A stretch of 64,000 bases of DNA from Carpediemonas membranifera BICM. Lineage: Eukaryota > Protista > Fornicata. A program made the translations under genes and the position numbers. The notes below the pieces were generated by a model. The model was not told the DNA's origin, did no database searches, and was given only the letters and a program-made list of their open reading frames with translations. The stretch spans positions 722,104 to 786,103 of the forward strand of contig JAHDYR010000003.1 of NCBI GenBank assembly GCA_019828565.1, written 5' to 3'. Below are positions 688 through 58,847 of the stretch, one piece after another. Positions within the stretch are counted from its first letter, which is position 1. Each line of letters opens with the position of its first letter.

Positions 688-2563
688 GTGAAGGCTTCCG
701 TTAACAAGGCCATGGGCGAGATTAACGGCGGAGGCGATAACAACGCGCCGCGGCGAGGAAATCTTGAACCCGGCATGCGTTCTTTCACGCAGGCTAAGTA
801 CACATTCACTTGCCTGCTTGCGTGCGTCTCTGCATCTGCGCACGCGTTGACCCCACCGAGGACGGTCAACCTGTTCGACGAGGAGGTCCTCACGCAGATC
901 GTCAGCATTGCTCAGCAAAAGGTGTCGAGGGCAAAGGCAGCGGATCGGTGCAGGTGGATTTGCGACCTGGCGATGTGGAGGGACCCTGGCATAACCCCAC
1001 TCGTCCGGGACTTCAGGGAAGCCTACGTTGGAATTGCAGCGCCATTTCAGAGCTGGTTGGGTGAGTACTCCACAGTCACCCGGGTCTGGCTCTCGCGCGC
1101 GTCACCCGCGTACCTGACCCGTCTTCGTGCTGGATTAGAACGGGTGCGTCCGCTCCTCCATGATCGGCCGGGTGTTCGACAGGATTTTCCCGACACCCAA
1201 GGCGAGCTCGACACTGAGGTTGCCGCCATAGCCGCCGATCATGACATGCATCATCGTCAAATGCATGCATCGCCCGAGGGGCAACGGGTGGGTCGCACTG
1301 GTACCGTGGCCGAGGCTCTCGTCGGCGTGCTGTCGTGCGTCACGCGCATGAGTGCTGCAGTGACCAAGCTGGTCACACTCCCTCGTGCCGTGAACCTCGA
1401 GCTCAGTCAGGCCCTGCCAGAGCCGAAGCTCGTCCCGTTCGTGCCGATGGCACCGGTCAGGCCTGGGTTCATAACCATCGAGCGCGGAGTAACAGCGCTC
1501 ACCCCAGCGATGAAGAGGCGCCTGCGTGTGCACGTGAATTGGTCAGCAACCAAGAATTTGACCGACGAGCAGGTTGATAGATACGAGCGTGATCACGGCG
1601 ACATCACCAAGCTCCGCAGAGTGCTCTCTGTGAAGACAGACGGGGTCTCTGCTGCTGTGACGGTTTGGGTGGGCTGCGAGAAATACCGTGGCGGTCGGGT
1701 GGCTGACCGGCCCACGTACAAAAAGGGTAGCAGCAACAAGCGGGCTCGGCTCGGTCAGGATGACGCCGAGGCTACTCCTGCCCCGGACATTCAAGCTCTC
1801 ATGGGCTTCGACCCTGGTGCTCGGTCGCTGGGCGGCTACACGATCCGCCGCCCAGACGGGCAGAGTGTCTGGCGTACTCGCTAAGTGTGGCTACACTGCC
1901 ACCCCCTCTTTCCGCGTGAATATGAGCGTAGCATCGTTCAAAACGACAAGTCTAGAGGCTCTCAAACAGTCGATTAGATTTGTCCATGAGAACATCGTTC
2001 AGATCATCAACGAGGGGACTAGAAAGTGTTTCCGCCGTGCGACTTTTGCCAATCACTGTCTGCGCCTGAAGCACTTCGCCCGGGCTGGACGTCAACTCCT
2101 GGATGATCTCGGCGGGCGCCCCCCGGAGCCCATTCACCTCGAAGTCGCGTATGGGGCTGCACTGTTCGGTTCCGCCGGCACTCCCTCCTGTGCTCCGTAC
2201 CGCCACTTTGCTCGAGCTCTTCCTGGCATCATGCTCCGGCACAACGTCGTCGTGAGTGTCACGATGGTCTCGGAATTCCGCACTTCCATCGTGTGGCCAT
2301 ACTGCAAAGCACACTTCCGACGTGTGGTGCACACACACCGCACCATGCTCTGCCAGAATCCCGCGTGCGAGGGAGCTCCATGGCGCGTTGAACGGCTACG
2401 TCGGCATCCCGAGCAGAGAGACAAACTTCTCAATCTCTCTCACCGAGATAAGAGCGCCAGCGAGAACATCCTTTGGTGCACCCACGATGCAACTTCAGAT
2501 CAGATAGAGCAATCTCCTTTCCACTACGACTCCCAGAGAGGTGCTCTTCCTCGCTATCATTAA
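688..2563 (+). pseudogene. Fanzor1-type (eukaryotic TnpB) RNA-guided endonuclease, split by a frameshift near 1860-1890
   Basis: ORF 688-1884 has SVKTDGVS and RuvC-I MGFDPG. Overlapping ORF 1688-2563 has SFKT, YGAALF, RuvC-II VSEFRTS, a Zn finger (W)PYC...CQNPAC and RuvC-III HRDKSASENI. The first Zn-finger Cys is replaced by Trp. True start uncertain. Confidence 0.85.
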
Positions 2564-2707
2564 CTTGCTAAGTTGAGCAAACACGCGCTGCAGCGCGCGT
2601 GATATGCTGCGCACGATTGATAGAGTATGATGAACCACACTGCGATCCTGATGCTGCTTGGATCACTGTGTGTTTTGGACTCAACAATTCTAATCCTGCG
2701 CAGCACA
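2564..2707 (+). ncRNA. Candidate Fanzor omega-RNA scaffold / element right end
   Basis: Lies directly 3' of the Fanzor stop. Hairpins GCGCTGCAGCGC and CACACTGCGATCC..GGATCACTGTGTG. Long-range stem TGCTGCGCA-C-GATT (2605-2618) with AATC-C-TGCGCAGCA (2692-2705). The terminal 25 nt recur at 282-306. Confidence 0.55.
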
Positions 2708-2718
2708 ATTATTTCGAG

Positions 2719-3117
2719 ATGGAGCCACAGCACGAAACCGAAGTGGATATTCCCACAAATGTAGGAGAAGAGCTCAAGGAGGAATCTATGCCGGTTGAGA
2801 AGCCCATGACGTCTGCAGATCTCTTCACCTCCCTGAAAAGTTATCTTTCCTCTCATCTCTCCGAAGCAGTGAATGATCTGGACCTCCTTGCTGATCTTAA
2901 CAAGCTTGGTGCCGAGAAGTACGAGCAGATGGCCAAGTTTTGCGGCCAGCTCATCCCCCAAGGCGAGGCGATGACAGAAGCATTCAAGCAGATCCAGCCC
3001 CATCTTGAGGAGATTGATGAGCTGATCAGCAACATTTCTGGTCTAGAGGCCACTGTGAATGCCCTGGACCACTACACGAAGGCGCTGCAGGGCAAGCTCG
3101 AGACGATCCTCCGCTAG
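2719..3117 (+). CDS. BLOC1S2: BLOC-1 subunit 2 (BLOS2)-like
   Basis: LLADLNKLGAEKYEQM...IQPHLEEID...LEATVNALDHYTKALQGK matches the BLOS2 pattern. ATG at 2719 chosen because the upstream part of the ORF is element DNA. Confidence 0.75.
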   Translation: MEPQHETEVDIPTNVGEELKEESMPVEKPMTSADLFTSLKSYLSSHLSEAVNDLDLLADLNKLGAEKYEQMAKFCGQLIPQGEAMTEAFKQIQPHLEEIDELISNISGLEATVNALDHYTKALQGKLETILR

Positions 3118-3363
3118 GCCGTAGATTGGACCAGCGGGATAAATATAGCAGGCGTGCACGCAAATGTACGAGGATGATGTTGTGTTGTACGATTACGATT
3201 TGTTCGTGAACGACGGCCGGGGGTTTGATCATCCATCATCAGCAGTTCGTTGGCCTAATCTGTCCATGGGCGACAGGACCATGTAATGAACCAAGTAATG
3301 TTACCCGGCCATGCGTCGGGACCAAGCTTACTCCTGGTGCAGCTTTAGAGGAGGCCAGATGAG

Positions 3364-4443
3364 ATGACGACGGGAGATTTAGTATTTCAAACCTATGTGC
3401 CTGGAAAGGTCATCTTATCTGGAGAACACGCCGTTGTGAATGGATACGCTGCCGTCGTCGTCCCTATCAACGCTTTCCTCACGCTGTCCATCAAAAGAAA
3501 CCAGAATGCTGCTGTTTTCACAGTCATTTCCGCCACCACCGGCACCAAGGAGATCTTCAGCCCATCCGAGCTATCCATGCTCTTCATCGCCCCACCACAG
3601 CCCCGCCCCACTCCCTGCGCAGCGATGGTGCATGCCCTTGCGCTATGCGCCAAGGCCAGAGGCCTTTCCAGTGACACAGTGATAAGCTCCATCATGGGGC
3701 TGACTGTATCTGTCGACTCCGAGCTGCCCATGGGAGCGGGCATGGGGTCCTCGGCCGCGCTGTGCACTGCCATGGCTCGAACCGCAGTCCACATCGTCTC
3801 CCAGCTCCCCCGTGAACCAGAGCAACGCATGTCAGACAGTCCACTCCCCCTCTCATCCCCCCCCTCACTCGCCCCCATACAGCTGGACGCGTCTGTTTAC
3901 GACGTGGCCCTCGCCCTGGAGCACCTGTTCCACGGCAAATCGTCGGGCATTGACGTCTTCTGCTGTCTAAACCCCAACCTCGTCACAGTATCCCGGACTG
4001 GGGTCCACTCAACTCTGGCCATGCCCGAGGGAGCACCGGGGATCGAGATCGTGGTTGTCCACAGCGGCGTGGAGAGGAGTACTGCCGATGCCGTGGCAAT
4101 GGTGCAGGGTAATGCTGACTACAAGCGGGTCCTGGGTCAGATTGGAGCTATTTCCGCAGAAACTGCGCGACTGCTGGGAGAAGGCATGACCGGCGATGCG
4201 CTCGAGACTGCTCTGGCTTCTGAGCAGCACCTAGAGGCTCTTGGCCTTTCCGTGCCCAGCATTGGCCACATCCTGTCCATCGGCCAGCAGCTCTCCCCGC
4301 CCTGGGTCGGCAAGATCTCGGGCGCCGGGCTCGGCGGGGCAGTGATCTTTCCCGTTGTTGCTGGGACACGTGATACCAGACCGCTGCTGGATGCTGTGCG
4401 GGCGGCGGGGTTCGAGGCCGCGCTGTACTCTACCGGCTGCTGA
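3364..4443 (+). CDS. MVK: Mevalonate kinase (GHMP family)
   Basis: PGKVILSGEHAVV, LPMGAGMGSSAA, HGKSSGID and KISGAGLGG motifs. Confidence 0.9.
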   Translation: MTTGDLVFQTYVPGKVILSGEHAVVNGYAAVVVPINAFLTLSIKRNQNAAVFTVISATTGTKEIFSPSELSMLFIAPPQPRPTPCAAMVHALALCAKARGLSSDTVISSIMGLTVSVDSELPMGAGMGSSAALCTAMARTAVHIVSQLPREPEQRMSDSPLPLSSPPSLAPIQLDASVYDVALALEHLFHGKSSGIDVFCCLNPNLVTVSRTGVHSTLAMPEGAPGIEIVVVHSGVERSTADAVAMVQGNADYKRVLGQIGAISAETARLLGEGMTGDALETALASEQHLEALGLSVPSIGHILSIGQQLSPPWVGKISGAGLGGAVIFPVVAGTRDTRPLLDAVRAAGFEAALYSTGC

Positions 4444-4499
4444 CCAGTGCCATGCAAGATTTACTAGCAAGCTGTTCTATTTATATTGATCGTATAAAT

Positions 4500-7400
4500 C
4501 TACCTCCCTCTGCCATATCCGTCGTATCCAAACGATATCCGGCTGGTGGAGTATCTTTTGTTGAGATCCTGCATCGTCGCGGGTGAGATGGCCGTGCTGC
4601 CGATCCTCAGCGGGTACGTCCCCGTCGCCCCGGGCCGCCGCATCGACGTCGGGTCTGACCCCGTCTCGAGGCGGTACCGGAGCCCCGGCATCTCGCGGCA
4701 CATGCGGCGGTTGCGGCCGAGGATCTTCATGCGGCACATCGCCCTGACCGCGAGCATCGCCACGCGGAGCCGGCGTCTGGCCTTCATGGGCCCCATTCTC
4801 CGGCGTACCGGGGAGATTGCGATGGGGGCGATGACCCGCTGATGCTGCATGCCCGTCATCAGCGTCCGCACGTAGTCGAGCGCCTCCTTCTCAGCCCGCT
4901 TAAGCTGCGCGGACTCGGACTCCGCGGCGGCCTTGTCCCTCGAGAGCCGCTCGATGACCATCTCCGAGTCGGCCAACGCTCGCTGGAGTCGAGCGAGCTG
5001 CTCGGCCGGATCGGGCTGGGGCTCGGGTGTGGCGCTGCGAAGCGTGGCGACGGTCTGCTTCAGTCCGCGGATCTCGCCGTCCTGCTGGGCAATCGTCTGG
5101 GCCTGGTCGGCGTTCAGCTGCTGGTACCGGCTGACGTCGGCGCTGAGTCGCGCGATCTCGGCCCGGAGCTCCCTGTTCACGGCCAGCATCTCCGCACCGT
5201 GCGCATGCTGCTGCTCGTCCTGGAGCTGTGCGATCGTCTGCTCCTTAACCTGCACCTGCTCTCTGAGATCGACCAGGTTGCGCTGCATCGCCGCCAGCTG
5301 GCTGCTGACGGACTCGAACCCGGCGCTGTCCCCGGGCCCCTTGGCTTGTCTGATCTCGGCGAGGAGGGAGTCGCGGTGGCTGGCCAAGATGCGCTCGATA
5401 TCAACATCGCGAGGCTGGGCACGCGGGGTGCCTGGGCGGTCGGCGAGTCGTTTGACCGTGCCGATGAGCGTCTCGGACGGCTTCACACCGCGTTCAATGC
5501 ACATCGTATCCAATTTCTGCCGTATCTCCGAGATTGCCTTGATCTGGGCCTTCTGTGAAGCAACGAGCTCGAGAACACTGTCCCAGGACTGGGCCTCGAG
5601 CTCAGGCCCCTCAAGCACCGCGGCCAGCCTTGCTTTGAGCTGTGACAGGTCAGCGGCGGCCGTGGCATCGTGTTCCTGGGCCGACGCGAGGATCTTTCTA
5701 TACCCTGCGGCAATCGCGTCAACAACCTTCCTCATGCTCTCGCCGCCCTGCTCCCGGACACCGGCGACGGCGGCCTCGAGACGGGTGCGGTCCACCTCGC
5801 CCCCGTACGCGGCCTGCGCTAGCTGGGCGATTACTCTCGGATCCAGCTCGTCCTCCTCGACGGCCTCGAGGGCCTCTACGGGCCAATCGGGTGGCGCCGT
5901 CATGGCGAGGGCGTCGTCCAGGTCAGCCCTGCTGAGGGAGGCAGGGGCATGAGGGGCACTGAGCTCGAGGTCGATGTCGGACGGCTTCACCGACATGAAC
6001 AGGGCGTCGTCTACGGCCTGCTTAGGGCGTACAAGGTCGTCGATGCGGGCCTCCAGCTGTGTCCGCTGGTCCAGGAGCTCATTCACACGGGCCCTGGCAT
6101 TGGCCAGCTCTTCGGACAGTGCATCGGCTCTCTCCGTGACAGAGTTGAGGCGCTGGGTGACGGCCTTGTTCTCGGAGGTCAGACGCTTCTTCTCGGCCTC
6201 CACTGCCTCCATATCACGTCTAATGGCATCGACCTGGGTCTTAGCGTCAGCCTTGGCGCCCTCCTCGCGCTGAACGAGCCCTGTCTCGAGCTTCATGACC
6301 TTCTCCTGCAGCAGCGCGTTGTCCGCGCTGAGGTCGGCCTTCGCTTCGAGCAGGAGCGACACCTCGTGCCGCAGTCCGCCAGCCTCCCTGGTGAGCGCTG
6401 CCTTTTCCTCGCCGAGGATGTCATTGAGCGCCTGCAACTCCTTCTGGCGGGCTGCAGTGGTTCTAACTTCCGTCAGCTTCTGCTCCAGCTTGCCAACAGC
6501 GTCCTCGAGCGCCGCCTTCGCCTCCGCCAGCACGGAGCTTTCCTTCTGTAGCTCCACTACCCTATTGGCTGCCTCCTCGCTGGTGTGCAGGGCGTCGTCC
6601 AGCGTCGCCCGGAGATCATCGGCCTCCGCTAGCGAGGCGTCGAGCTTGGCCTGCAGTCCAGCGGCCTGAGTCTCAAACGGCGCGAGTCGGGCGACCTCGC
6701 CCTTCGCCTTCCGCAGCTCTCTGCCCCGACTCTCGAGGGCCTGCTGAACACCGGCCATGCTCTCTTGGTATGTCGCCGCAGACGAGTCAAGCTCAGCCTC
6801 GAGGGACTCCTTGCCGGCCCGGGCCTGGGCGACGTCCTCGTGGGCGGCGTGGAGCTCCCGGCGGACGCGGGTGAAGTCGCGGGTCAGGCCAAGGTGGTCC
6901 TCGCGGAGCTTGGCGAGCTTCTGCTCGAGCTCGGTCTGGGTAGACTCGCGGTCCTTGGCGGACTCCTCGAGGCGGGTCTCAAGAGCGGCCTTCTCCTCGC
7001 GGATCTCGGCGAGCTTCTGCTCGAGCTCGGTCTGGGTAGACTCGCGGTCCTTGGCGGACTCCTCGAGGCGGGTCTCGAGAGCGGCCTTCTCCTCGCGGAT
7101 CTCGGCAAGCTTCTGCTCGAGCTCGGTCTGGGTAGACTCGCGGTCCTTGGCGGACTCCTCGAGGCGGGTCTCGAGAGCGGCCTTCTCCTCGCGGATCTCG
7201 GCGAGCTTCTGCTCGAGCTCGGTCTGGATAGACTCGCGGTCCTTGGCGGACTCCTCGAGGCGGGTCTCAAGAGCGGCCTTCTCCTCGCGGATCTCGGCAA
7301 GCTTCTGCTCGAGCTCGGTCTGGGTAGACTCGCGGTCCTTGGCGGACTCCTCGAGGCGGGTCTCGAGAGCGGCCTTCTCCTCGCGGATCTCGGCAAGCTT

Positions 7401-45987: not shown

Positions 45988-46156
45988 CAACTTTATCACT
46001 CTCACTGAACACAGCTTTAAATTCTCTCTGATTTCTCGCCGAGTGTTGAATGCGTCGGTCCGTTGGCCAAGTCTGCCACTGAAGCAGACGGCCACAGAGG
46101 CACCCACACTTTGTATTGTCAGATTTGACCAGAGCGCGTGAGATCTGCCGAATTCC

Positions 46157-47158
46157 ATGGGTGAGCAAGTAACGATCGTTCATCTGGCATTTATCATCGT
46201 ATTCTCTGTTTTTGTTCAGTCGGCATGTTCTATACTGTCCAAAATGAGCCAGGTTGACGGCAACTATGAATATAGTGTCCCCGTGAGCAATTTCGCAATC
46301 GAAATCGTGAAATTCGCTGTTGCATCGACATTATTCTACACGAGAACACCAGCGCCCGACCGGAATCGGCAACTCTCGACCTTTTTCCACAGTCGTCGAG
46401 ACATTGTCTTCTTCGCCATCCCCTCGCTAATCTACGTCTGCGTCAACATTACGTACATGATTATGTTCATATTCACTGACCCTGGTACCGCTCAGATGCT
46501 CGTCAACTTCAAGCTGATCACTACTGCCGTCCTCTCTGAGATAGTGTTTGCCAAGCTTCTTTCCAGACCGCAGTGGCTTTCACTCATCATGACGTTCGTA
46601 GGCCTTGCTCTAACATCATGGCCGATGTCTGGCAAGTCGTTTGAGTCTGACATTGTCATTTCATTCGCCCTGGCCTTCGCGTTCTCCGTCTTTAGCGCCT
46701 GTGCTGGTGTCTCATGCGAGTACGTGTTCAAGCGCACCGATTATAGCCTGCACATGCAGAACAGCGTGATGTACTTCTACGGCGCCGTGATTAGCCTCAT
46801 CACCGCCGCTGTAGCCGACCCGTCCGTTGTACTCAACCCGTTCGCCGGATTCAACACTTACGCTATTCTGCTCGTTTTGATGAGGGCCGTCTCGGGCCTT
46901 CTCATCTCGGCCGTAATGAAGTATGCAGACACGATTACGAAGAACTTCTGCAGCGCCGCCTCCTTGTGTGCGACTGTGATCTTGTCCAAGCTCATTTTCG
47001 ACGTTCCCATCGTTGCCCAAAAGAGCTTTGCTATCATCATCATATTTAACGCGATGCTCTTGTACGGCATTCCCGAGTCCAAGGCGCCCGTTCCTGCTGT
47101 CGAGCATCGCAAGGTCGAGAAAGTTGACCTGTCTGATTGCGAAGAGAATGCTGTATGA
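46157..47158 (+). CDS. Nucleotide-sugar transporter (SLC35A family)
   Basis: ~10 TM segments; EIVKF, AIPSLIY, NFKLITTA, QW.SL, AGV..E and VMKYADTITKNF. Confidence 0.9.
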   Translation: MGEQVTIVHLAFIIVFSVFVQSACSILSKMSQVDGNYEYSVPVSNFAIEIVKFAVASTLFYTRTPAPDRNRQLSTFFHSRRDIVFFAIPSLIYVCVNITYMIMFIFTDPGTAQMLVNFKLITTAVLSEIVFAKLLSRPQWLSLIMTFVGLALTSWPMSGKSFESDIVISFALAFAFSVFSACAGVSCEYVFKRTDYSLHMQNSVMYFYGAVISLITAAVADPSVVLNPFAGFNTYAILLVLMRAVSGLLISAVMKYADTITKNFCSAASLCATVILSKLIFDVPIVAQKSFAIIIIFNAMLLYGIPESKAPVPAVEHRKVEKVDLSDCEENAV

Positions 47159-47217
47159 ATGCACGATGCCTTTATAAATATTTATTGCTTTACGAGATCA
47201 CCATGTAATATTGGGCT

Positions 47218-50200
47218 TTTACTACAACGAAGCAATCCAGGCCAGCTCTCCTGCGTCTGGCCGATCCGGAGTCGAGCGCTTGGTCGACCCCCCATACGCG
47301 CACCTGGGACAGTGACGCCCGCAGGCTTGCTGTGCATACCAAGACACTGTCTACGTATGCGCGCCTGGTGCTGCCAGTCGGGCCGTGACCCGCCCGAGGT
47401 GTGGCTGCCCGAGCTGAAGTCGAGAAATTGGGTCGACCCAAAAGTCGCGAGTGGGAGGCGCCAAGACGGCGTGCTCCTGGAATCAGTAGGGCTCTGCACG
47501 CCCTGCGTATTCCGGTAGCACGCGGTCCTGCCGCTCCCCGTCCGCCCCAAGTGCGACTCGACCAGATCGATCGGATGCGCGCATCCAGCACAGCAGCCCC
47601 AGTCAGGCTTGGGCGCGCGGCAGCGCACGCATGTACTATTTACTACAACGAAGCAATCCAGGCCAGCTCTCCTGCGTCTGGCCGATCCGGAGTCGAGCGC
47701 TTGGTCGACCCCCCATACGCGCACCTGGGACAGTGACGCCCGCAGGCTTGCTGTGCATACCAAGACACTGTCTACGTATGCGCGCCTGGTGCTGCCAGTC
47801 GGGCCGTGACCCGCCCGAGGTGTGGCTGCCCGAGCTGAAGTCGAGAAATTGGGTCGACCCAAAAGTCGCGAGTGGGAGGCGCCAAGACGGCGTGCTCCTG
47901 GAATCAGTAGGGCTCTGCACGCCCTGCGTATTCCGGTAGCACGCGGTCCTGCCGCTCCCCGTCCGCCCCAAGTGCGACTCGACCAGATCGATCGGATGCG
48001 CGCATCCAGCACAGCAGCCCCAGTCAGGCTTGGGCGCGCGGCAGCGCACGCATGTACTATTTACTACAACGAAGCAATCCAGGCCAGCTCTCCTGCGTCT
48101 GGCCGATCCGGAGTCGAGCGCTTGGTCGACCCCCCATACGCGCACCTGGGACAGTGACGCCCGCAGGCTTGCTGTGCATACCAAGACACTGTCTACGTAT
48201 GCGCGCCTGGTGCTGCCAGTCGGGCCGTGACCCGCCCGAGGTGTGGCTGCCCGAGCTGAAGTCGAGAAATTGGGTCGACCCAAAAGTCGCGAGTGGGAGG
48301 CGCCAAGACGGCGTGCTCCTGGAATCAGTAGGGCTCTGCACGCCCTGCGTATTCCGGTAGCACGCGGTCCTGCCGCTCCCCGTCCGCCCCAAGTGCGACT
48401 CGACCAGATCGATCGGATGCGCGCATCCAGCACAGCAGCCCCAGTCAGGCTTGGGCGCGCGGCAGCGCACGCATGTACTATTTACTACAACGAAGCAATC
48501 CAGGCCAGCTCTCCTGCGTCTGGCCGATCCGGAGTCGAGCGCTTGGTCGACCCCCCATACGCGCACCTGGGACAGTGACGCCCGCAGGCTTGCTGTGCAT
48601 ACCAAGACACTGTCTACGTATGCGCGCCTGGTGCTGCCAGTCGGGCCGTGACCCGCCCGAGGTGTGGCTGCCCGAGCTGAAGTCGAGAAATTGGGTCGAC
48701 CCAAAAGTCGCGAGTGGGAGGCGCCAAGACGGCGTGCTCCTGGAATCAGTAGGGCTCTGCACGCCCTGCGTATTCCGGTAGCACGCGGTCCTGCCGCTCC
48801 CCGTCCGCCCCAAGTGCGACTCGACCAGATCGATCGGATGCGCGCATCCAGCACAGCAGCCCCAGTCAGGCTTGGGCGCGCGGCAGCGCACGCATGTACT
48901 ATTTACTACAACGAAGCAATCCAGGCCAGCTCTCCTGCGTCTGGCCGATCCGGAGTCGAGCGCTTGGTCGACCCCCCATACGCGCACCTGGGACAGTGAC
49001 GCCCGCAGGCTTGCTGTGCATACCAAGACACTGTCTACGTATGCGCGCCTGGTGCTGCCAGTCGGGCCGTGACCCGCCCGAGGTGTGGCTGCCCGAGCTG
49101 AAGTCGAGAAATTGGGTCGACCCAAAAGTCGCGAGTGGGAGGTGCCAAGACGGCGTGCTCCTGGAATCAGTAGGGCTCTGCACGCCCTGCGTATTCCGGT
49201 AGCACGCGGTCCTGCCGCTCCCCGTCCGCCCCAAGTGCGACTCGACCAGATCGATCGGATGCGCGCATCCAGCACAGCAGCCCCAGTCAGGCTTGGGCGC
49301 GCGGCAGCGCACGCATGTACTATTTACTACAACGAAGCAATCCAGGCCAGCTCTCCTGCGTCTGGCCGATCCGGAGTCGAGCGCTTGGTCGACCCCCATA
49401 CGCGCACCTGGGACAGTGACGCCCGCAGGCTTGCTGTGCATACCAAGACACTGTCTACGTATGCGCGCCTGGTGCTGCCAGTCGGGCCGTGACCCGCCCG
49501 AGGTGTGGCTGCCCGAGCTGAAGTCGAGAAATTGGGTCGACCCAAAAGTCGCGAGTGGGAGGCGCCAAGACGGCGTGCTCCTGGAATCAGTAGGGCTCTG
49601 CACGCCCTGCGTATTCCGGTAGCACGCGGTCCTGCCGCTCCCCGTCCGCCCCAAGTGCGACTCGACCAGATCGATCGGATGCGCGCATCCAGCACAGCAG
49701 CCCCAGTCAGGCTTGGGCGCGCGGCAGCGCACGCATGTACTATTTACTACAACGAAGCAATCCAGGCCAGCTCTCCTGCGTCTGGCCGATCCGGAGTCGA
49801 GCGCTTGGTCGACCCCCCATACGCGCACCTGGGACAGTGACGCCCGCAGGCTTGCTGTGCATACCAAGACACTGTCTACGTATGCGCGCCTGGTGCTGCC
49901 AGTCGGGCCGTGACCCGCCCGAGGTGTGGCTGCCCGAGCTGAAGTCGAGAAATTGGGTCGACCCAAAAGTCGCGAGTGGGAGGCGCCAAGACGGCGTGCT
50001 CCTGGAATCAGTAGGGCTCTGCACGCCCTGCGTATTCCGGTAGCACGCGGTCCTGCCGCTCCCCGTCCGCCCCAAGTGCGACTCGACCAGATCGATCGGA
50101 TGCGCGCATCCAGCACAGCAGCCCCAGTCAGGCTTGGGCGCGCGGAAGCGCACGCATGTACTATTTACTACAACGAAGCAATCCAGGCCAGCTCTCCTGC

Positions 50201-53200
50201 GTCTGGCCGATCCGGAGTCGAGCGCTTGGTCGACCCCCCATACGCGCACCTGGGACAGTGACGCCCGCAGGCTTGCTGTGCATACCAAGACACTGTCTAC
50301 GTATGCGCGCCTGGTGCTGCCAGTCGGGCCGTGACCCGCCCGAGGTGTGGCTGCCCGAGCTGAAGTCGAGAAATTGGGTCGACCCAAAAGTCGCGAGTGG
50401 GAGGCGCCAAGACGGCGTGCTCCTGGAATCAGTAGGGCTCTGCACGCCCTGCGTATTCCGGTAGCACGCGGTCCTGCCGCTCCCCGTCCGCCCCAAGTGC
50501 GACTCGACCAGATCGATCGGATGCGCGCATCCAGCACAGCAGCCCCAGTCAGGCTTGGGCGCGCGGCAGCGCACGCATGTACTATTTACTACAACGAAGC
50601 AATCCAGGCCAGCTCTCCTGCGTCTGGCCGATCCGGAGTCGAGCGCTTGGTCGACCCCCCATACGCGCACCTGGGACAGTGACGCCCGCAGGCTTGCTGT
50701 GCATACCAAGACACTGTCTACGTATGCGCGCCTGGTGCTGCCAGTCGGGCCGTGACCCGCCCGAGGTGTGGCTGCCCGAGCTGAAGTCGAGAAATTGGGT
50801 CGACCCAAAAGTCGCGAGTGGGAGGCGCCAAGACGGCGTGCTCCTGGAATCAGTAGGGCTCTGCACGCCCTGCGTATTCCGGTAGCACGCGGTCCTGCCG
50901 CTCCCCGTCCGCCCCAAGTGCGACTCGACCAGATCGATCGGATGCGCGCATCCAGCACAGCAGCCCCAGTCAGGCTTGGGCGCGCGGCAGCGCACGCATG
51001 TACTATTTACTACAACGAAGCAATCCAGGCCAGCTCTCCTGCGTCTGGCCGATCCGGAGTCGAGCGCTTGGTCGACCCCCCATACGCGCACCTGGGACAG
51101 TGACGCCCGCAGGCTTGCTGTGCATACCAAGACACTGTCTACGTATGCGCGCCTGGTGCTGCCAGTCGGGCCGTGACCCGCCCGAGGTGTGGCTGCCCGA
51201 GCTGAAGTCGAGAAATTGGGTCGACCCAAAAGTCGCGAGTGGGAGGTGCCAAGACGGCGTGCTCCTGGAATCAGTAGGGCTCTGCACGCCCTGCGTATTC
51301 CGGTAGCACGCGGTCCTGCCGCTCCCCGTCCGCCCCAAGTGCGACTCGACCAGATCGATCGGATGCGCGCATCCAGCACAGCAGCCCCAGTCAGGCTTGG
51401 GCGCGCGGCAGCGCACGCATGTACTATTTACTACAACGAAGCAATCCAGGCCAGCTCTCCTGCGTCTGGCCGATCCGGAGTCGAGCGCTTGGTCGACCCC
51501 CCATACGCGCACCTGGGACAGTGACGCCCGCAGGCTTGCTGTGCATACCAAGACACTGTCTACGTATGCGCGCCTGGTGCTGCCAGTCGGGCCGTGACCC
51601 GCCCGAGGTGTGGCTGCCCGAGCTGAAGTCGAGAAATTGGGTCGACCCAAAAGTCGCGAGTGGGAGGCGCCAAGACGGCGTGCTCCTGGAATCAGTAGGG
51701 CTCTGCACGCCCTGCGTATTCCGGTAGCACGCGGTCCTGCCGCTCCCCGTCCGCCCCAAGTGCGACTCGACCAGATCGATCGGATGCGCGCATCCAGCAC
51801 AGCAGCCCCAGTCAGGCTTGGGCGCGCGGCAGCGCACGCATGTACTATTTACTACAACGAAGCAATCCAGGCCAGCTCTCCTGCGTCTGGCCGATCCGGA
51901 GTCGAGCGCTTGGTCGACCCCCCATACGCGCACCTGGGACAGTGACGCCCGCAGGCTTGCTGTGCATACCAAGACACTGTCTACGTATGCGCGCCTGGTG
52001 CTGCCAGTCGGGCCGTGACCCGCCCGAGGTGTGGCTGCCCGAGCTGAAGTCGAGAAATTGGGTCGACCCAAAAGTCGCGAGTGGGAGGTGCCAAGACGGC
52101 GTGCTCCTGGAATCAGTAGGGCTCTGCACGCCCTGCGTATTCCGGTAGCACGCGGTCCTGCCGCTCCCCGTCCGCCCCAAGTGCGACTCGACCAGATCGA
52201 TCGGATGCGCGCATCCAGCACAGCAGCCCCAGTCAGGCTTGGGCGCGCGGCAGCGCACGCATGTACTATTTACTACAACGAAGCAATCCAGGCCAGCTCT
52301 CCTGCGTCTGGCCGATCCGGAGTCGAGCGCTTGGTCGACCCCCCATACGCGCACCTGGGACAGTGACGCCCGCAGGCTTGCTGTGCATACCAAGACACTG
52401 TCTACGTATGCGCGCCTGGTGCTGCCAGTCGGGCCGTGACCCGCCCGAGGTGTGGCTGCCCGAGCTGAAGTCGAGAAATTGGGTCGACCCAAAAGTCGCG
52501 AGTGGGAGGCGCCAAGACGGCGTGCTCCTGGAATCAGTAGGGCTCTGCACGCCCTGCGTATTCCGGTAGCACGCGGTCCTGCCGCTCCCCGTCCGCCCCA
52601 AGTGCGACTCGACCAGATCGATCGGATGCGCGCATCCAGCACAGCAGCCCCAGTCAGGCTTGGGCGCGCGGCAGCGCACGCATGTACTATTTACTACAAC
52701 GAAGCAATCCAGGCCAGCTCTCCTGCGTCTGGCCGATCCGGAGTCGAGCGCTTGGTCGACCCCCCATACGCGCACCTGGGACAGTGACGCCCGCAGGCTT
52801 GCTGTGCATACCAAGACACTGTCTACGTATGCGCGCCTGGTGCTGCCAGTCGGGCCGTGACCCGCCCGAGGTGTGGCTGCCCGAGCTGAAGTCGAGAAAT
52901 TGGGTCGACCCAAAAGTCGCGAGTGGGAGGCGCCAAGACGGCGTGCTCCTGGAATCAGTAGGGCTCTGCACGCCCTGCGTATTCCGGTAGCACGCGGTCC
53001 TGCCGCTCCCCGTCCGCCCCAAGTGCGACTCGACCAGATCGATCGGATGCGCGCATCCAGCACAGCAGCCCCAGTCAGGCTTGGGCGCGCGGAAGCGCAC
53101 GCATGTACTATTTACTACAACGAAGCAATCCAGGCCAGCTCTCCTGCGTCTGGCCGATCCGGAGTCGAGCGCTTGGTCGACCCCCCATACGCGCACCTGG

Positions 53201-53347
53201 GACAGTGACGCCCGCAGGCTTGCTGTGCATACCAAGACACTGTCTACGTATGCGCGCCTGGTGCTGCCAGTCGGGCCGTGACCCGCCCGAGGTGTGGCTG
53301 CCCGAGCTGAAGTCGAGAAATTGGGTCGACCCAAAAGTCGCGAGTGG
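47218..53347. repeat. Tandem array of a 421-bp GC-rich structured unit, ~14.6 copies
   Basis: Period 421 (47218, 47639, ...); near-identical units; one 420-bp unit (C deletion ~49395). Ends mid-unit at the RT junction. Confidence 0.98.
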
Positions 53348-55900
53348 CCGTGATGGGTACAAAACGACAAAAAGGATCCTCGCAAACCAAGTGTTCCGCT
53401 TCTGGAACGAGAAGCAGCACGCCGGTCTCCCGGTGATGCTGAAGGCTGGAAACAAGATTCTAGCAAGGCAGAGGGAGATGGCAGACTCCCTCCAGGAGCA
53501 GTACGCGAAGGTAAGCTCCGGGAAGGAACCCACCTGGGAACCCACCTGGGAAACCGAGCCGGAAACGGACATGGAGGACCATCCGCCATCGCTTGAAGAA
53601 GTGACAGCGGCGGTCAAGTCCATAAGGAAGTCCTCGGCCGGAGGCCCGGACGGGATTATTGGAGATTGTCTGAGGGACCTCCCCGAGTCAGCGTACGAGG
53701 CAATCACAGTCCTGCTCGCGAAAGTATACGACAGCGGGACCATGCCAACCACATGGAAGTATGCAGCGGTGTCGCCTATCCACAAGGTTGGGAAGGACAA
53801 GCTCACGCCCAGCTCGTACAGACCGATCTCCCTCACCCCCTCCTATACAGAGCCTACGGGAGGATACTGAAATGGCGCCTCAGGCCGACGGTGGAGAAGT
53901 TCATCCCCAGAGAGCAAGTTGGGTTCATGAAAGGGAAAACTGTAGTGGATCACATAGCCCTCCTAGCCCAACTCCACCAGTCCGGAAACCGTACCAGCGT
54001 CCTACTTGACATAGCAAAAGCATATGATACGGTCCCAAGGGACCTGCTGGTGAACAAGTTGACGCTCATGGGGGTACACCCAAGACTGACGAGGGCCATC
54101 CGAAATACACTTACAGAAACGTACATCTCGGTACGAGGGGCAAGCACATGGTCCAGAACAAACATGGGGGTCAAGCAAGGATGTGTGGTGGCCCCCACTC
54201 TGTTCATTCTCTTCACAGCTAACTGGCTAAGCCAGGCGGCACTGTACCTCCGGCATAGAGAGATCCCGGACCCCTGCCTCCCTCCAACGGACGATAGGCC
54301 CAAAAACTGCCTCATTGCAATGTTTGTAGATGATACAAGCATCTCAGCCGAGACCCCGCAGCTCGCCGAAGAAGGCACAGACGCAGTGGTCAGGGTAATT
54401 GAAGCCCATGGACTCCAGACCAGCCCAGGCAAAAATGTGGTGATAAGTACCGACGTAACTGCAGCGGTCAGCATCCAAGGAACTCCCACACTGGCGTCAG
54501 ACTCAGCAAGGTATCTGGGACTCTGGCTAGCCAGCGGGAAGAATCCGTTGGCAGCATGCATCAAAATGAAGACGTCACAATCCCGGAAATACCTAGCCCT
54601 GGCAAGGAGAGCAGGGTGGACCAAAGGATCCACCCCGGCCGCCACCTCGGAATCCATCCTCAGAACCTTCCTCTGGCCCAAGATCGAGTTCGGGATCGAG
54701 ATCTGGGGCCAAGCGCTCAGGGGAAGAGCCATCTGGAACAACTGGCGCGGCCTAATGGCAGGCACAGGACCAGGGGGAGGAGGAGCCGCCCGTGTACTAA
54801 TGGGATGGATGTGCTGGGAGGCAGATATGGGGCAGAGAGCGGTGAGGCTCTATGAGTCTGCGCACGACCCGGACCGTCCGACCCCCTAGGGAATCTGGAC
54901 TGGGCGACAGCGGAGAGAGGATCGGTCTTACATCGCCTCTACCAATGGCGACGGAGCGTCCTCCAGGGCACACAGGAGGAGATGCCCGCCAGGGAAAGAG
55001 CAAAGAGGGGAGGCTGGACCCTCACAGCAGAAGAACTACTGCACACCGGGGAGCCGAACGGCCAAAGGGGTGGCAACAGTACTAGCCCCGAAAGTCATCC
55101 TCAGCATGCAGCAAGGGAAGAGACCCAAGAAACCAGGAATGATCAAGGGTGAGATGATAACCAGACGGGAAGTCAAGAGAGTAATCATGACTGCATCCAA
55201 CACACTCCCCTCCCCCAGCAACAGTGGCAGAAGCAGAGCCATACTTGGGAGCGCGATCGGCCAGCCCCAGGCCCTCCTGAGCAGGATCAAGCGGTGTTGC
55301 CCCCTATGTACCCTGGACTCAGAAGGTGACACCATTACTCGCCTGTACACTGTCACCAGAACCGCGGCGGAAACCACCAAAATCCTCTCAGAATGGGCAT
55401 ACAACCAGCCCCTGGGAACACAAAGCCACATCATCTGCCAATGCAAGGCGGTAGAACGCCCAGAAGGATGGGATGACATCCTGGCGGAGGCGCATCTACG
55501 CACACAGTACCACGCCCTAAGGCAAGGGCAGGAGGCGGAGTGGTACAACTCAAGGGCAATCCTGGAAATGCTCTGGCTCCTCCGCAGCGAGGACCATACC
55601 GTCAGAGAGGGACTGCAGAACGGCAGATGTGCCCTTCTGAACCTCCGGAAAGACGGGTAAGTACACCATCCCAGAATCCTATGACCTCTGGGACCAGGGT
55701 CAAACTGGGACCCAACCCCCCGCCTCAACCGAAGCGGAGCGCTCCTGGGATCAGCGGGGGACGCAAGCCCCACGTATCCCGGTAGCACCCAGCCGCGGAA
55801 GGGGGACTCAACCCCGAACACTAATCTCGCTAACACACAAACGCTCACCCATACTGGGAACGTAGACAACATTCAGCCGGCAGAACCGGCACACTCTTCA
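53348..55900 (+). mobile_element. 5'-truncated, frameshifted non-LTR retrotransposon (RT + C-terminal Cys/His knuckle + 3' UTR)
   Basis: SAGGPDGI, YRPISL, EQVGF, LLDIAKAYDTVPR, GVKQGCVVAPTLF, MFVDD and RYLG; CPLC...HIICQC in ORF 55070-55660. Frame breaks near 53840 and 54890. 3' end approximate; no endonuclease domain seen. Confidence 0.9.
55741..55788 (+). ncRNA. Conserved stem-loop in the retroelement 3' UTR, shared with every 421-bp unit (e.g. 47473-47521)
   Basis: GCTCCTGGRATCAG-[variable hairpin]-CGTATYCCGGTAGCAC with a compensatory A-U/G-C change. Confidence 0.75.
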
Positions 55901-57210
55901 CACCATGCAGTCAATTCTGGTACCTTTTCTGGAACAAATAGTTCCAGAATTGGTTCCAGAATGCCAGAAAAAATGGCATTTGCAAGAAAAACTAAACGCG
56001 TTCAAACAATTTAGCGACGCCTTGCCATGGGATGTAAAGCAATATGCAACTAATACTGGGCCCAAGGAACGTTGATACGTACTGCTCTCATGAACTCACT
56101 CACTTTTCAGCAGAGCTCGACCAAAAACTAACAGAGGCTTGCCCGAGGTGTGCTTAAGCCAGCTCCAACTCTCTCTCAGTCTGTGACAGCTCCCCAAAAA
56201 AAATATTCTTGCTCAAAGTTGAGGTTTTCGGGAAATACTGCCAAAAAGTTTGCTTCTGCTCAAGAACGGGGGATGCGCGTTGGATACCGACACCGTTACG
56301 TAACAGTTTAACATTCATTATAACAGCGCTAGCCTCCAGATTTCCTTGCGCACGCCTTTATCTGGAGAAAATAGCACAAACTTTCGCAAGCAAACGCAAA
56401 TCGATAGAAAAATATGTTTCATGTCCAACGGAGCTAAAACTGAGCACAGTGTTATTCATCCTTCTATTCTACTAGTTTATCACTTCAAAAGGATCTGAAC
56501 TTCAGTATTGATGGTGTTATAGGCACTGGTTCGGTTCGAGTCAAAACTGACTAAACTGTGACGACGGCTAGGTGTTGAAACATGCCATACTCACTCGTAG
56601 CGTGGCGCTTAATAGTGCCAGAATTGCTTCACTGCCACAAATCAATGGAGGTTCATGTTTGTGCATAAAGTACACAAACATGAGAAGACACGAATTCGTC
56701 ACTGAATTAGAGACGATGCGCATAAGAATCAAAGATTTGGTTCAAATAGAGGAATACTACCTCTTTGCAGACGATATCGCGAAGGAATACCTTGATGTTG
56801 CGTCCATATACCTGATGAAGGCAATCCTACGTTCTCAGTGAGGCAACTAGCAAACATGAACCGTATCAAGAGACAAATATTGAAGCACTCCCCGTCCACA
56901 TCATGTTTGATAAATTTTCTGGTGTCATTCTGCTGTTAATATCAGACAAGCAAACAACGTAGTGATGCGGAGAGACCGCGTGCTGCTAGAATACGCAGGG
57001 CATGATGCACCTGTTGATACCAGGAGCGCTGTCTGGTATGATGATTAATTGCAACGAACGCGATCACCGGAAATTACCTTACCTTACCTTACCTGCAGGT
57101 ACCATGGGTGTTCGTTTTCGTCTCCAAACGCCATGGTGTAAGAGCATAAAGTGCATTTTCTGTTTACTGTGCCGTTGGGGATTGATGGCGCTGGCGTAGG
57201 GGTGCTGTGT

Positions 57211-57651
57211 GGGCGCCAGGGATGAGGCGCCAGGGATGAGGGAGCCAAGATGAGGGCGCCAGGGATGAGGCGCCAGGGATGAGGCGCCAGGGATGAGGCG
57301 CCAGGGATGAGGCGCCAGGGATGAGGCGCCAGGGATGAGGGAGCCAAGATGAGGGCGCCAGGAATGAGGCGCCAGGGATGAGGGAGCCAAGATGAGGGCG
57401 CCAGGGATGAGGCGCCAGGGATGAGGCGCCAGGGATGAGGCGCCAGGGATGAGGCGCCAGGGATGAGGCGCCAGGGATGAGGCGCCAGGATGAGGGCGCC
57501 AGGGATGAGGCGCCAGGGATGAGGCGCCAGGGATGAGGCGCCAGGGATGAGGCGCCAGGGATGAGGCGCCAGGGATGAGGGAGCCAAGATGAGGGCGCCA
57601 GGAATGAGGCGCCAGGGATGAGGGAGCCAAGATGAGGGCGCCAGGGATGAG
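57211..57651 (+). repeat. 14-bp purine-rich minisatellite (GGCGCCAGGGATGA, ~30 units with variants)
   Basis: Directly visible. Confidence 0.95.
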
Positions 57652-57664
57652 GAGTACAGTATTT

Positions 57665-58006
57665 GAACCCCGAAAACGCCATATTACCAGCACCAATGAG
57701 CTTCATCAACGAAGATGCGCTCACTGGTGCCTGTTATGGCGTTTTCGGGGTTCGTCGATCATTCTGCTCCCAAATCTGCACCTGTATTTTCGTGAGCATG
57801 CCCGGGAGCTGGGCCAGACGAGTGGTGCCACAGGGACTAAGCTCCGCTGCTCAGCCTCTGCCAGGCGACACTCGTCTGAATTCTGCACGAAAAATTCAGA
57901 CGACGAATGATGGGCAAGGGCCGCGAAAACGCTGAAGTACCAGCGCAAGTAGAGCGGTTTGCAATAAAATAGCTTACTTGCGCTGGTGCTGGCGTTTTCG
58001 GGGCCC
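57665..58006. repeat. Two related imperfect inverted-repeat pairs (57665-57701/57719-57753 and 57918-57951/57975-58006)
   Basis: Arms CGAAAACGC...CCAGC and GCTGG/TGGTGC...GGCGTTTTCG. Confidence 0.85.
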
Positions 58007-58013
58007 TGAATTG

Positions 58014-58400
58014 CCCCGGGCGCTCTCCCAGGCTTCTCTCTCCCGGGCTCCTCTCTCCCGGGCGCTCTCCGGGCTTCTCTCTCCCGCGCTCTTCTCCCCG
58101 GGCGCTCTCCAGGCTTCTCTCTCCCGGGCTCCTCTCTCCGGGCTCTCTCCCGGGCGCTCTCCCGGGCTTCTCTCTCCCGGGCTCTTCTCCCCCGGGCGCT
58201 CTCCCGGGCTCCTCTCTCCCGCGCTCTTCTCCCCGGGCGCTCTCCCGGGCTCCTCTCTCCCGCGCTCTTCTCCCCGGGCTCCTCTCCCTGGGCTCTCTCC
58301 GGGCTCCTCTCTCCGCGCTCTTCTCCCCCAGGCTCTATCCTCCGGGGCTCCTGTCCCCAGCGCTGTTTCCCAGGCGCTCTGCTCTCTCCAGCGTCCTCAC
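58014..58400 (+). repeat. Pyrimidine-rich degenerate minisatellite (CTCTCTCCCGGGCG-like)
   Basis: Directly visible. Confidence 0.9.
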
Positions 58401-58847
58401 TCGTAAATGTACGTTGCTGTCTTGTCTGCTTGATCTGATTTCATTTAGTGTGCACTTTAGGGGATAGTTTCATTGCAACGCCAAAATGGCGAGTTCAGGT
58501 TGTAGCAATGATCTGATGCGCGGAATGTACTAGAAAACATTGCAATTACAACGCAAAGCAGCGAAAAGCGGAGAAATCAACATCAATAACAACATCAACA
58601 CCAAAAGAACAGTATCCCAAAGAATTGTGGGCGTTGCTGCGCCAAAGAGCAATAAATGACCACAAAGCATTCGCTTATGCACAATTAGCTGCCAGAAAGA
58701 ACACTACACCGTTACTTTGGATCATCCCAGTTCGCCGGAGATGACGCAGGTCCAGAACGCTGCCTTGGAGGGCTGGTGAAGCGGTTGTGTAGCGCTTACT
58801 CGCCTGGCCTTTGGGGCTCTCTCAACATCCTTCCAGACTACTGCATT

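Follow-up and report, generated by a model that had tools for sequence, protein, structure and literature searches.

A candidate structured RNA motif shared by LINE 3′ untranslated regions and satellites, and a probable LINE insertion within a 421-bp array of Carpediemonas membranifera

R1/R2 in ribosomal DNA and SLACS/CZAR in spliced-leader arrays are site-specific long interspersed nuclear elements (LINEs) of tandem repeats. Hammerhead satellites are known in newts, schistosomes and crickets, and retrozymes are known as well. In stringent LINEs, the ORF2 region between the endonuclease (EN) and the reverse transcriptase (RT) binds a 3′ stem-loop, and the stem is read generally while the loop is read specifically (PMC4176376, PMC1636434). 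Satellites derived from transposable elements (TEs) are an established phenomenon (PMC5932611, PMC9659126), and TE dimers are able to expand into arrays (PMC5932611; reviewed in PMC9659126 and PMC12628747). Here we describe a 64,000-nt stretch of the Carpediemonas membranifera BICM genome (the window; C4:722104-786103, from an assembly of 24.2 Mb in 69 contigs), in which a LINE fragment adjoins a 421-bp satellite array and both carry the same hairpin motif. Positions without a contig name are those of the window. With a probability of about 0.7, we favor an ordinary LINE insertion in an existing array, together with a motif that is a conserved cis-element of LINE RNA and is also found in satellites.

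The left half of the array occupies 47218-53347 on the plus strand (Tandem Repeats Finder, TRF: period 421, 14.6 copies, 99% matches). Homology to the LINE, which we designate family C, begins exactly at 53348, and the junction is sharp, with no spacer between the array and the 5′-truncated RT, as the preliminary description of the locus had it. The LINE part is an internal fragment (53348-55903, plus strand) corresponding to positions 1501-4053 of a fuller copy, L032. Its endonuclease and everything upstream are gone through 5′ truncation, with the truncation point in the linker that joins the endonuclease to the RT domain, and its 3′ 779 bp were split off by insertion of a DNA transposon with terminal inverted repeats (TIRs), here called Y. 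A genome search found the 421-bp family in one other place only, C54:53680-59673, as a minus-strand array of ~14 units. Read in unit orientation, the C54 array starts at unit position 222 and is preceded directly by L032 positions 4052-4830 with the (TTTC)n tail. These 779 bp are the missing part of the LINE and complement the 1501-4053 kept in the window. The array in the window stops at unit position 237, and unit bases 222-237 (CAAAAGTCGCGAGTGG; left copy at 53332-53347, plus strand) occur on both sides of the LINE as a target-site duplication. We give its length as 15-16 bp since the first C could belong to the LINE tail, and this length matches the size seen in other copies of family C.

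A duplication flanking the complete LINE points to target-primed insertion into a pre-existing array and not to an array built by the enzyme. By this comparison the LINE would have entered an existing 421-bp array by the ordinary route, and the 421-bp family appears to be the two halves of one ancestral array, ~29 units in all. The template-jump junction proposed earlier is better described as the 5′ end of a standard, 5′-truncated LINE insertion flanked by its 15-16 bp duplication. The earlier observation that the array does not resume after the element holds for the window contig but not beyond it, as the array resumes at C54:59673-53680, past the missing LINE 3′ end. The 3′ untranslated region (UTR) of the RT element had been taken to end at ~55900; full copies run 779 bp further to the (TTTC)n tail, and Y cuts the copy in the window. 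The outer array ends carry neither a LINE tail nor a duplication. Of the ~30 loci of family C, only 1, the window locus itself, touches a satellite. By rough estimate a few tenths of a percent of the genome is satellite DNA with the motif, and the insertions of LINE families A and C number well over 100; from these two figures a single LINE within a satellite is unremarkable, a judgement we reasoned and did not compute.

The RT element is an apurinic/apyrimidinic endonuclease (APE)-type retrotransposon without long terminal repeats (non-LTR). Its identification as an RT, made from the letters alone, was borne out by a match to RVT_1 at 53840-54526 (plus strand, E 4.9e-27) inside the open reading frame (ORF) 53666-54889. 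The window copy no longer has an intact reading frame: the frame changes near 53870 and runs into a stop at 54889. The nearest solved structures to the RT are LINE-1 ORF2p and R2. Alignment to ORF2 of family A placed the C-terminal part of ORF2, with its Cys-Cys...His-Cys cluster, at 55070-55660 (plus strand), with the stop codon at 55658-55660. The APE-type endonuclease domain Exo_endo_phos_2 scored 30.4 bits in the family A copy L065 and 24.6 bits in the family C copy L032, above and below the cutoff of 27.4, respectively. One family C copy, L048, retains an uninterrupted ORF2 of 1119 amino acids, and a protein search with it returned solely distant matches of 21-29% identity.

Family C is a young multi-copy element, and at least 22 genomic copies cover the full 2.55-kb query with a match of ≥99%. 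Beyond the stretch kept in the window, other copies continue for >1.5 kb on the 5′ side and 779 bp on the 3′ side. They share a common 3′ end with the (TTTC)n tail at L032:4822-4834, and their 5′ starts vary (755, 811, 1501, 2179, 2334 and 2974 in L032 coordinates). Target duplications in copies with both ends measure 16 bp (L033) and 14 bp (L056), and the duplications at the target sites of other copies are unrelated, with no site specificity. The family C copies L031-L053 are ~99% identical, yet their frameshifts mostly differ between copies. Some of the differences among copies may be assembly errors, since many fall in homopolymer runs, the C-run of the motif included. The 5′ flank of one copy, L054 (1-1500; C16:717007-718885), is a run of N.

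The left part of Y lies at 55904-58508 (plus strand) and opens with a 56-bp TIR at 55904-55959 that starts CATGCAGTCAATTCTGG; the transposon is multi-copy. Its insertion in the LINE 3′ UTR shows an apparent 2-bp duplication (AC). On C54, Y occupies 60452-~70139, and its right TIR, the same 56-bp repeat in inverted orientation, abuts the remaining LINE 3′ end at position 4052 with a 2-bp overlap of AC. A Y end also splits the 3′ UTR in three other copies of family C (L043, L048 and L052), and the insertion points in the four copies fall at 4052/3, 4160 and 4702 in L032 coordinates. Dozens of partial copies of Y exist, with a complex interior to which a 14-bp minisatellite at 57212-57652 belongs. 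The split between C4 and C54 could reflect either recombination between Y copies or an assembly mis-join inside Y. The sequence of events at this locus would then be an insertion of family C by target-primed reverse transcription into an existing array of ~29 units of 421 bp, truncated at its 5′ end in the EN-RT linker and leaving the 15-16 bp duplication. Y would have entered the LINE 3′ UTR afterwards, and recombination between Y copies or a mis-join would have left the array halves to end on C4 and C54.

Each array unit carries one copy of the motif at 421-bp spacing. The first of the 14 copies lies at 47464-47526 (plus strand; three-stem hairpin fold, -38.8 kcal/mol, z -5.6) and the last at 52936-52998. 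The copy in the LINE 3′ UTR spans 55732-55793 (plus strand), ~80 nt past the ORF2 stop, with the pattern match at 55741-55788. All 15 matches in the window are on the plus strand, and a pattern scan of shuffled window sequences returned 0. The motif is a hairpin of ~60 nt with three stems and invariant arms, GCUCCUGGRAUCAG and CGUAUYCCGGUAGC. The outer stem, P1, consists of GCU/AGC plus an extension and is followed by a C/U mismatch. P2 is a 7-bp stem, CUGGRAU/AUYCCGG, with an invariant U.G wobble, and is followed by a 2x2 internal loop. P3 is the apical hairpin, with a different sequence in every family. Four families fold independently into this same shape. The whole 421-nt unit folds equally on both strands, with z about -3.

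The strict motif pattern matched 274 places in the genome and 0 in a reversed control. When all of P2 was freed there were 321 matches (2 in the control), and with a pattern keyed on the outer arms only there were 420 (4 in the control). A genome-wide covariance-model search added nothing among its best 150 hits. Much of what had been noticed about the motif in the window was thus confirmed and extended: the array and LINE copies share orientation and differ by a compensatory A-U to G-C swap, further copies covary as described below, and the link between LINE 3′ UTRs and tandem repeats runs genome-wide (~420 copies against 4 in the control). A weaker similarity upstream of the motif was not recovered, with sensitive BLAST aligning just 55 nt of the unit to family C (78% identity, E 1.9e-6, pairwise).

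Covariation within the motif is pronounced. Pair 5, the variable pair in P2, reads G-C 115 times and A-U 159 times among the copies, and the mismatched combinations G..U and A..C have 0 genomic matches each. The innermost P2 pair, pair 7, is U-A in most families and C-G in the first motif of a 655-bp satellite and in a 1084-bp satellite. All four combinations of pairs 5 and 7 occur among the families, so that at least three double substitutions, or recombination, are needed to account for them. In P1 a compensatory C-G/U-A change separates the 278-bp from the 421-bp satellite. A five-family consensus fold has 21 pairs, 8 of which show changes on both sides, and 91% of its cells are paired, vs 35-47% when the partners are slid by 1-3 columns; 0 of 500 shuffles reached its covariation score. 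The fold took in five families, and the pairs of the extra families were read by eye from pattern matches. Broken pairs in canonical copies are single-copy mutations only.

Two further observations bear on how the motif may work. The invariant T opposite G pairs on the LINE-sense strand only, which argues for a single-stranded structure of the sense strand. The 278- and 421-bp families agree at all 28 arm positions, against 74% identity over the surrounding 114 nt. By our own arithmetic the chance of 28 unchanged positions at that divergence is ~2e-4, which indicates constraint on the arms along the 278/421-bp lineage, at a time when it may have been a LINE UTR or already a satellite. The motif probably acts as RNA.

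LINEs of two families carry the motif in the 3′ UTR. In family C the distance from motif to 3′ tail is ~890 nt in full copies. In family A the motif lies ~315 nt past the ORF2 stop and ~780 nt before the AAATTTC(TTTC)n end. The 3′ ends of both families are of the same type, (TTTC)n, and the C-terminal halves of their ORF2 proteins are 38% identical. The motif is the sole detectable 3′-UTR similarity between them, and is therefore better kept than the LINE proteins. The commonest carriers in the genome are internal-deletion derivatives of LINE A (L065, L067, L062 and L066), in which the endonuclease and EN-RT linker are fused to the last ~975 bp of the element. The fusion starts 155 nt upstream of the motif, and two deletion variants begin within 7 nt of each other.

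Tandem copies of a LINE-A derivative also occur. In L062/L063 (C1:593701 and 594777) two motif copies lie 1076 bp apart, and the same dimer is found at C8:1014034/1015111, C24:134008/135082 and C24:211577/212655, for at least four loci. At the joint, one copy ends ~125 nt past the motif and a second takes over at ORF2 position 587. Template switching or a nested insertion could have produced the dimer, which is a possible satellite seed. We found no direct intermediate between it and the 421-bp unit.

At least five satellite families bear the motif (278, 421, 548, 655 and 1084 bp). Apart from the 421-bp family with its window and C54 halves, they comprise a 278-bp satellite on C42, C50 and C54:159-230 kb, a 548-bp satellite on C8 and, by homology, C57, a 655-bp satellite at C1:1309650-1317553 with two diverged motif copies per unit, and a 1084-bp satellite at C6:139743-148463 in which P2 is fully compensated (GGAAC/GUUCC). 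The 278-bp family includes at least 13 solo copies (C1:1431427-1830452, C33 and C16), and the eight on C1 all lie on the same strand within 400 kb. A dispersed family, J, has an apical hairpin resembling that of the 548-bp satellite, and two singleton motif copies were also present. A 572-bp family on C22, homologous to unit positions 109-350, gave no match to the motif patterns used. The 278-, 548-, 572-, 655- and 1084-bp arrays, the J copies and the interior of the C54 transposon are known to us from coordinates and short pattern matches. In L068, an RT fragment truncated in mid-domain lies immediately before a 278-bp module; the fragment comes from a third LINE family and has 56% protein identity to family C.

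The locus resembles R1/R2 and SLACS/CZAR in that a 5′-truncated LINE sits within a tandem array in the same orientation as the units. It differs in that the window LINE is APE-type and lacks site specificity, with 1 of ~30 loci in a satellite. Like retrozymes and hammerhead satellites, the 421-bp family has one conserved structured motif per unit and a link to a retroelement, but we found no hammerhead or other known self-cleaving motif in 46000-57000 with Rfam 15. Closest in form are UnaL2/UnaSINE1 of eel and ZfL2 of zebrafish, where a LINE 3′-UTR stem has an internal loop and a family-specific apical part (PMC1636434, PMC4176376). As there, the Carpediemonas LINEs end in a short-repeat tail instead of poly(A), and non-coding repeats bear the same hairpin. 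Unlike there, the Carpediemonas hairpin lies 780-890 nt from the 3′ end, outside the terminal tail, it is shared with tandem satellites that lack a LINE tail and not with dispersed short interspersed nuclear elements (SINEs), and recognition by a protein is putative. LINE/SINE pairs share a 3′ tail, while here the motif is internal in the 421-bp unit and ~890 nt (C) or ~780 nt (A) from the LINE ends. As in satellites born from TEs, tandem arrays share sequence with a resident TE in TE-rich surroundings, and the 1076-bp dimers of a LINE-A derivative may be comparable to TE dimers (cf. PMC5932611). The homology to family C (55 nt at 78%) is limited to the motif. Unlike TE-born satellites, the families share a structured element of ~50 nt alone, kept in at least five of them with compensatory changes, which points to constraint on the module and not to random capture of a TE.

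Several other explanations were weighed against an ordinary insertion and a LINE cis-element. The one put forward in the preliminary description, that the array is a complementary DNA (cDNA) concatemer arising as the RT left its own mRNA for a 421-nt RNA that was circular or repeatedly re-used, draws on the sharp, spacerless junction and on the strand shared by motif and RT, and the 3′ UTR-to-ORF junction of the LINE-A derivative, recurring at 1076-bp spacing at four or more loci, would fit a template switch. We nevertheless regard it as the least credible of those considered, as the array continues past the complete insertion in the phase that gives the 15-16 bp duplication, its outer ends have neither LINE tail nor duplication, and satellite contact is limited to one of ~30 family C loci. 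Scarcely more probable is a small self-cleaving ribozyme, with arrays akin to those of retrozymes or newt satellites and with array and LINE transcripts that would be cut into RNAs of unit length. Conserved internal loops between covarying stems, a CA dinucleotide in the internal loop and one motif per satellite unit are what such a ribozyme would offer. The retrozyme-like character earlier suggested for the satellite found no counterpart in Rfam, where no ribozyme matched at E<=1, and neither the 1084-bp family nor the second 655-bp motif keeps the same loop letters. A twister-sister-like ribozyme was rejected on loop size: the motif has loops of 1x1 and 2x2, and minimal twister-sister-like ribozymes require loops of 5 and 6 nt (PMC11620745).

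The motif might instead work as DNA: a host protein of chromatin, centromeres or recombination, for example, could bind it as a palindrome or cruciform, and tandem amplification would be promoted wherever the motif lands. This we think improbable. The invariant T opposite G pairs on the LINE-sense strand only, compensatory changes preserve pairing, and in LINE UTRs the motif keeps a constant place just downstream of ORF2, all of which outweigh its enrichment in arrays of at least five unrelated periods, the retention of arm sequence beyond pairing alone and the equal folding of the 421-nt unit on both strands (z about -3). Somewhat less improbable, if still doubtful, is that the RT picks its template by the hairpin and that satellites are born repeatedly, and perhaps spread, by RNA template switching around the motif. 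If the hairpin were such a handle, engaged by the RT on UTR fragments or satellite transcripts, tandem cDNA arrays with motif-centred units would amount to a satellite system built by an RT. More serious, although we still hold it unlikely, is that LINE proteins reverse-transcribe or mobilise satellite transcripts in trans through the recognition hairpin, which would make the satellites active non-autonomous partners in which selection keeps the motif. Stringent LINEs do recognise stem-loops (PMC4176376, PMC1636434), the 278- and 421-bp families have invariant arms within 114 nt of shared sequence at 74% identity, a compensatory P1 change separates them while their apical hairpins are different yet paired, and the 278-bp family is found at many loci with 13 or more solo copies. 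The 421-bp family, by contrast, is confined to two halves of one array at a single ancestral locus and its units lack the LINE-type AAATTTC(TTTC)n end, so it does not behave as the dispersed, SINE-like partner it had been suggested to be. The motif also lies 780-890 nt from the LINE 3′ end and not in the tail, and satellite apical hairpins are unlike those of the two abundant LINEs. Dispersal at the DNA level is seen in a decayed module with satellite-type flanks inside Y (56975-57034, minus strand; covariance model 33.7 bits, E 3.5e-6), in which stem P2 is broken and the fold is no better than shuffles; satellite modules can thus travel at the DNA level.

An ordinary LINE insertion, with a motif that belongs to LINE RNA, accommodates these observations best. 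In this reading the motif would serve the sense-strand RNA of LINEs as a conserved cis-element that diverged families have retained in their 3′ UTRs, and by analogy it may bind a LINE protein or a host factor needed for retrotransposition. Its invariant arms and family-specific apical hairpins would suit the recognition scheme of stringent LINEs, a scheme that remains an analogy given the 780-890 nt between motif and 3′ end and a protein-level part that is predicted only. The satellites most likely arose from LINE-UTR-type modules. Such motif-containing modules, amplified in tandem much like other TE sequences that became satellites (PMC5932611, PMC9659126), would have given rise to the satellites and to some dispersed copies, with descent running from LINE to satellite and the source being the UTR of an unseen LINE lineage or a non-autonomous derivative.

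A number of results weigh against this account. Satellite units share only 45-55 nt with LINE UTRs, vs 110-240 nt among themselves, so that descent from a LINE UTR is inferred and not traced. No donor LINE with a 421-type apical hairpin was found, and at least two other LINE lineages (one with ~70%-identical copies and that of the L068 RT fragment) had no exact motif near the expected 3′ UTR. An A.C mismatch is fixed in the second of the two motifs in the 655-bp unit, and the internal-loop letters differ there and in the 1084-bp family. The covariation rests on ~11 related families of one genome. An exact-motif scan of metagenome contigs gave no match, and neither that scan nor the ORF2 protein search produced relatives from other species.

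The ordinary character of the junction corrects a tempting over-reading of the locus. The motif itself qualifies as a candidate new structured RNA element, for which the comparative support within one genome is unusually clean. Its recurrence in five or more satellite families offers a concrete way to test how LINE RNA recognition relates to the origin or maintenance of satellites. It also offers a handle on the repeat biology of Carpediemonas, which reportedly lacks canonical kinetochore and replication-origin proteins and whose chromosome-maintenance machinery is said to be atypical.

Searches for other features around the array returned little. Rfam 15 had no match at E<=1 over 46000-57000, ribozymes included, and ARAGORN reported nothing on the 421-bp unit. 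A likeness of the motif to 5S ribosomal RNA helix IV or a tRNA box was dropped, as no covariance-model hit lay behind it. A scan for bacterial promoters and terminators found nothing, a result that is uninformative for a eukaryote. Upstream of the array, a predicted nucleotide-sugar transporter gene (46157-47158; Pfam PF04142) ends 60 bp before the array start, as counted from its stop codon.

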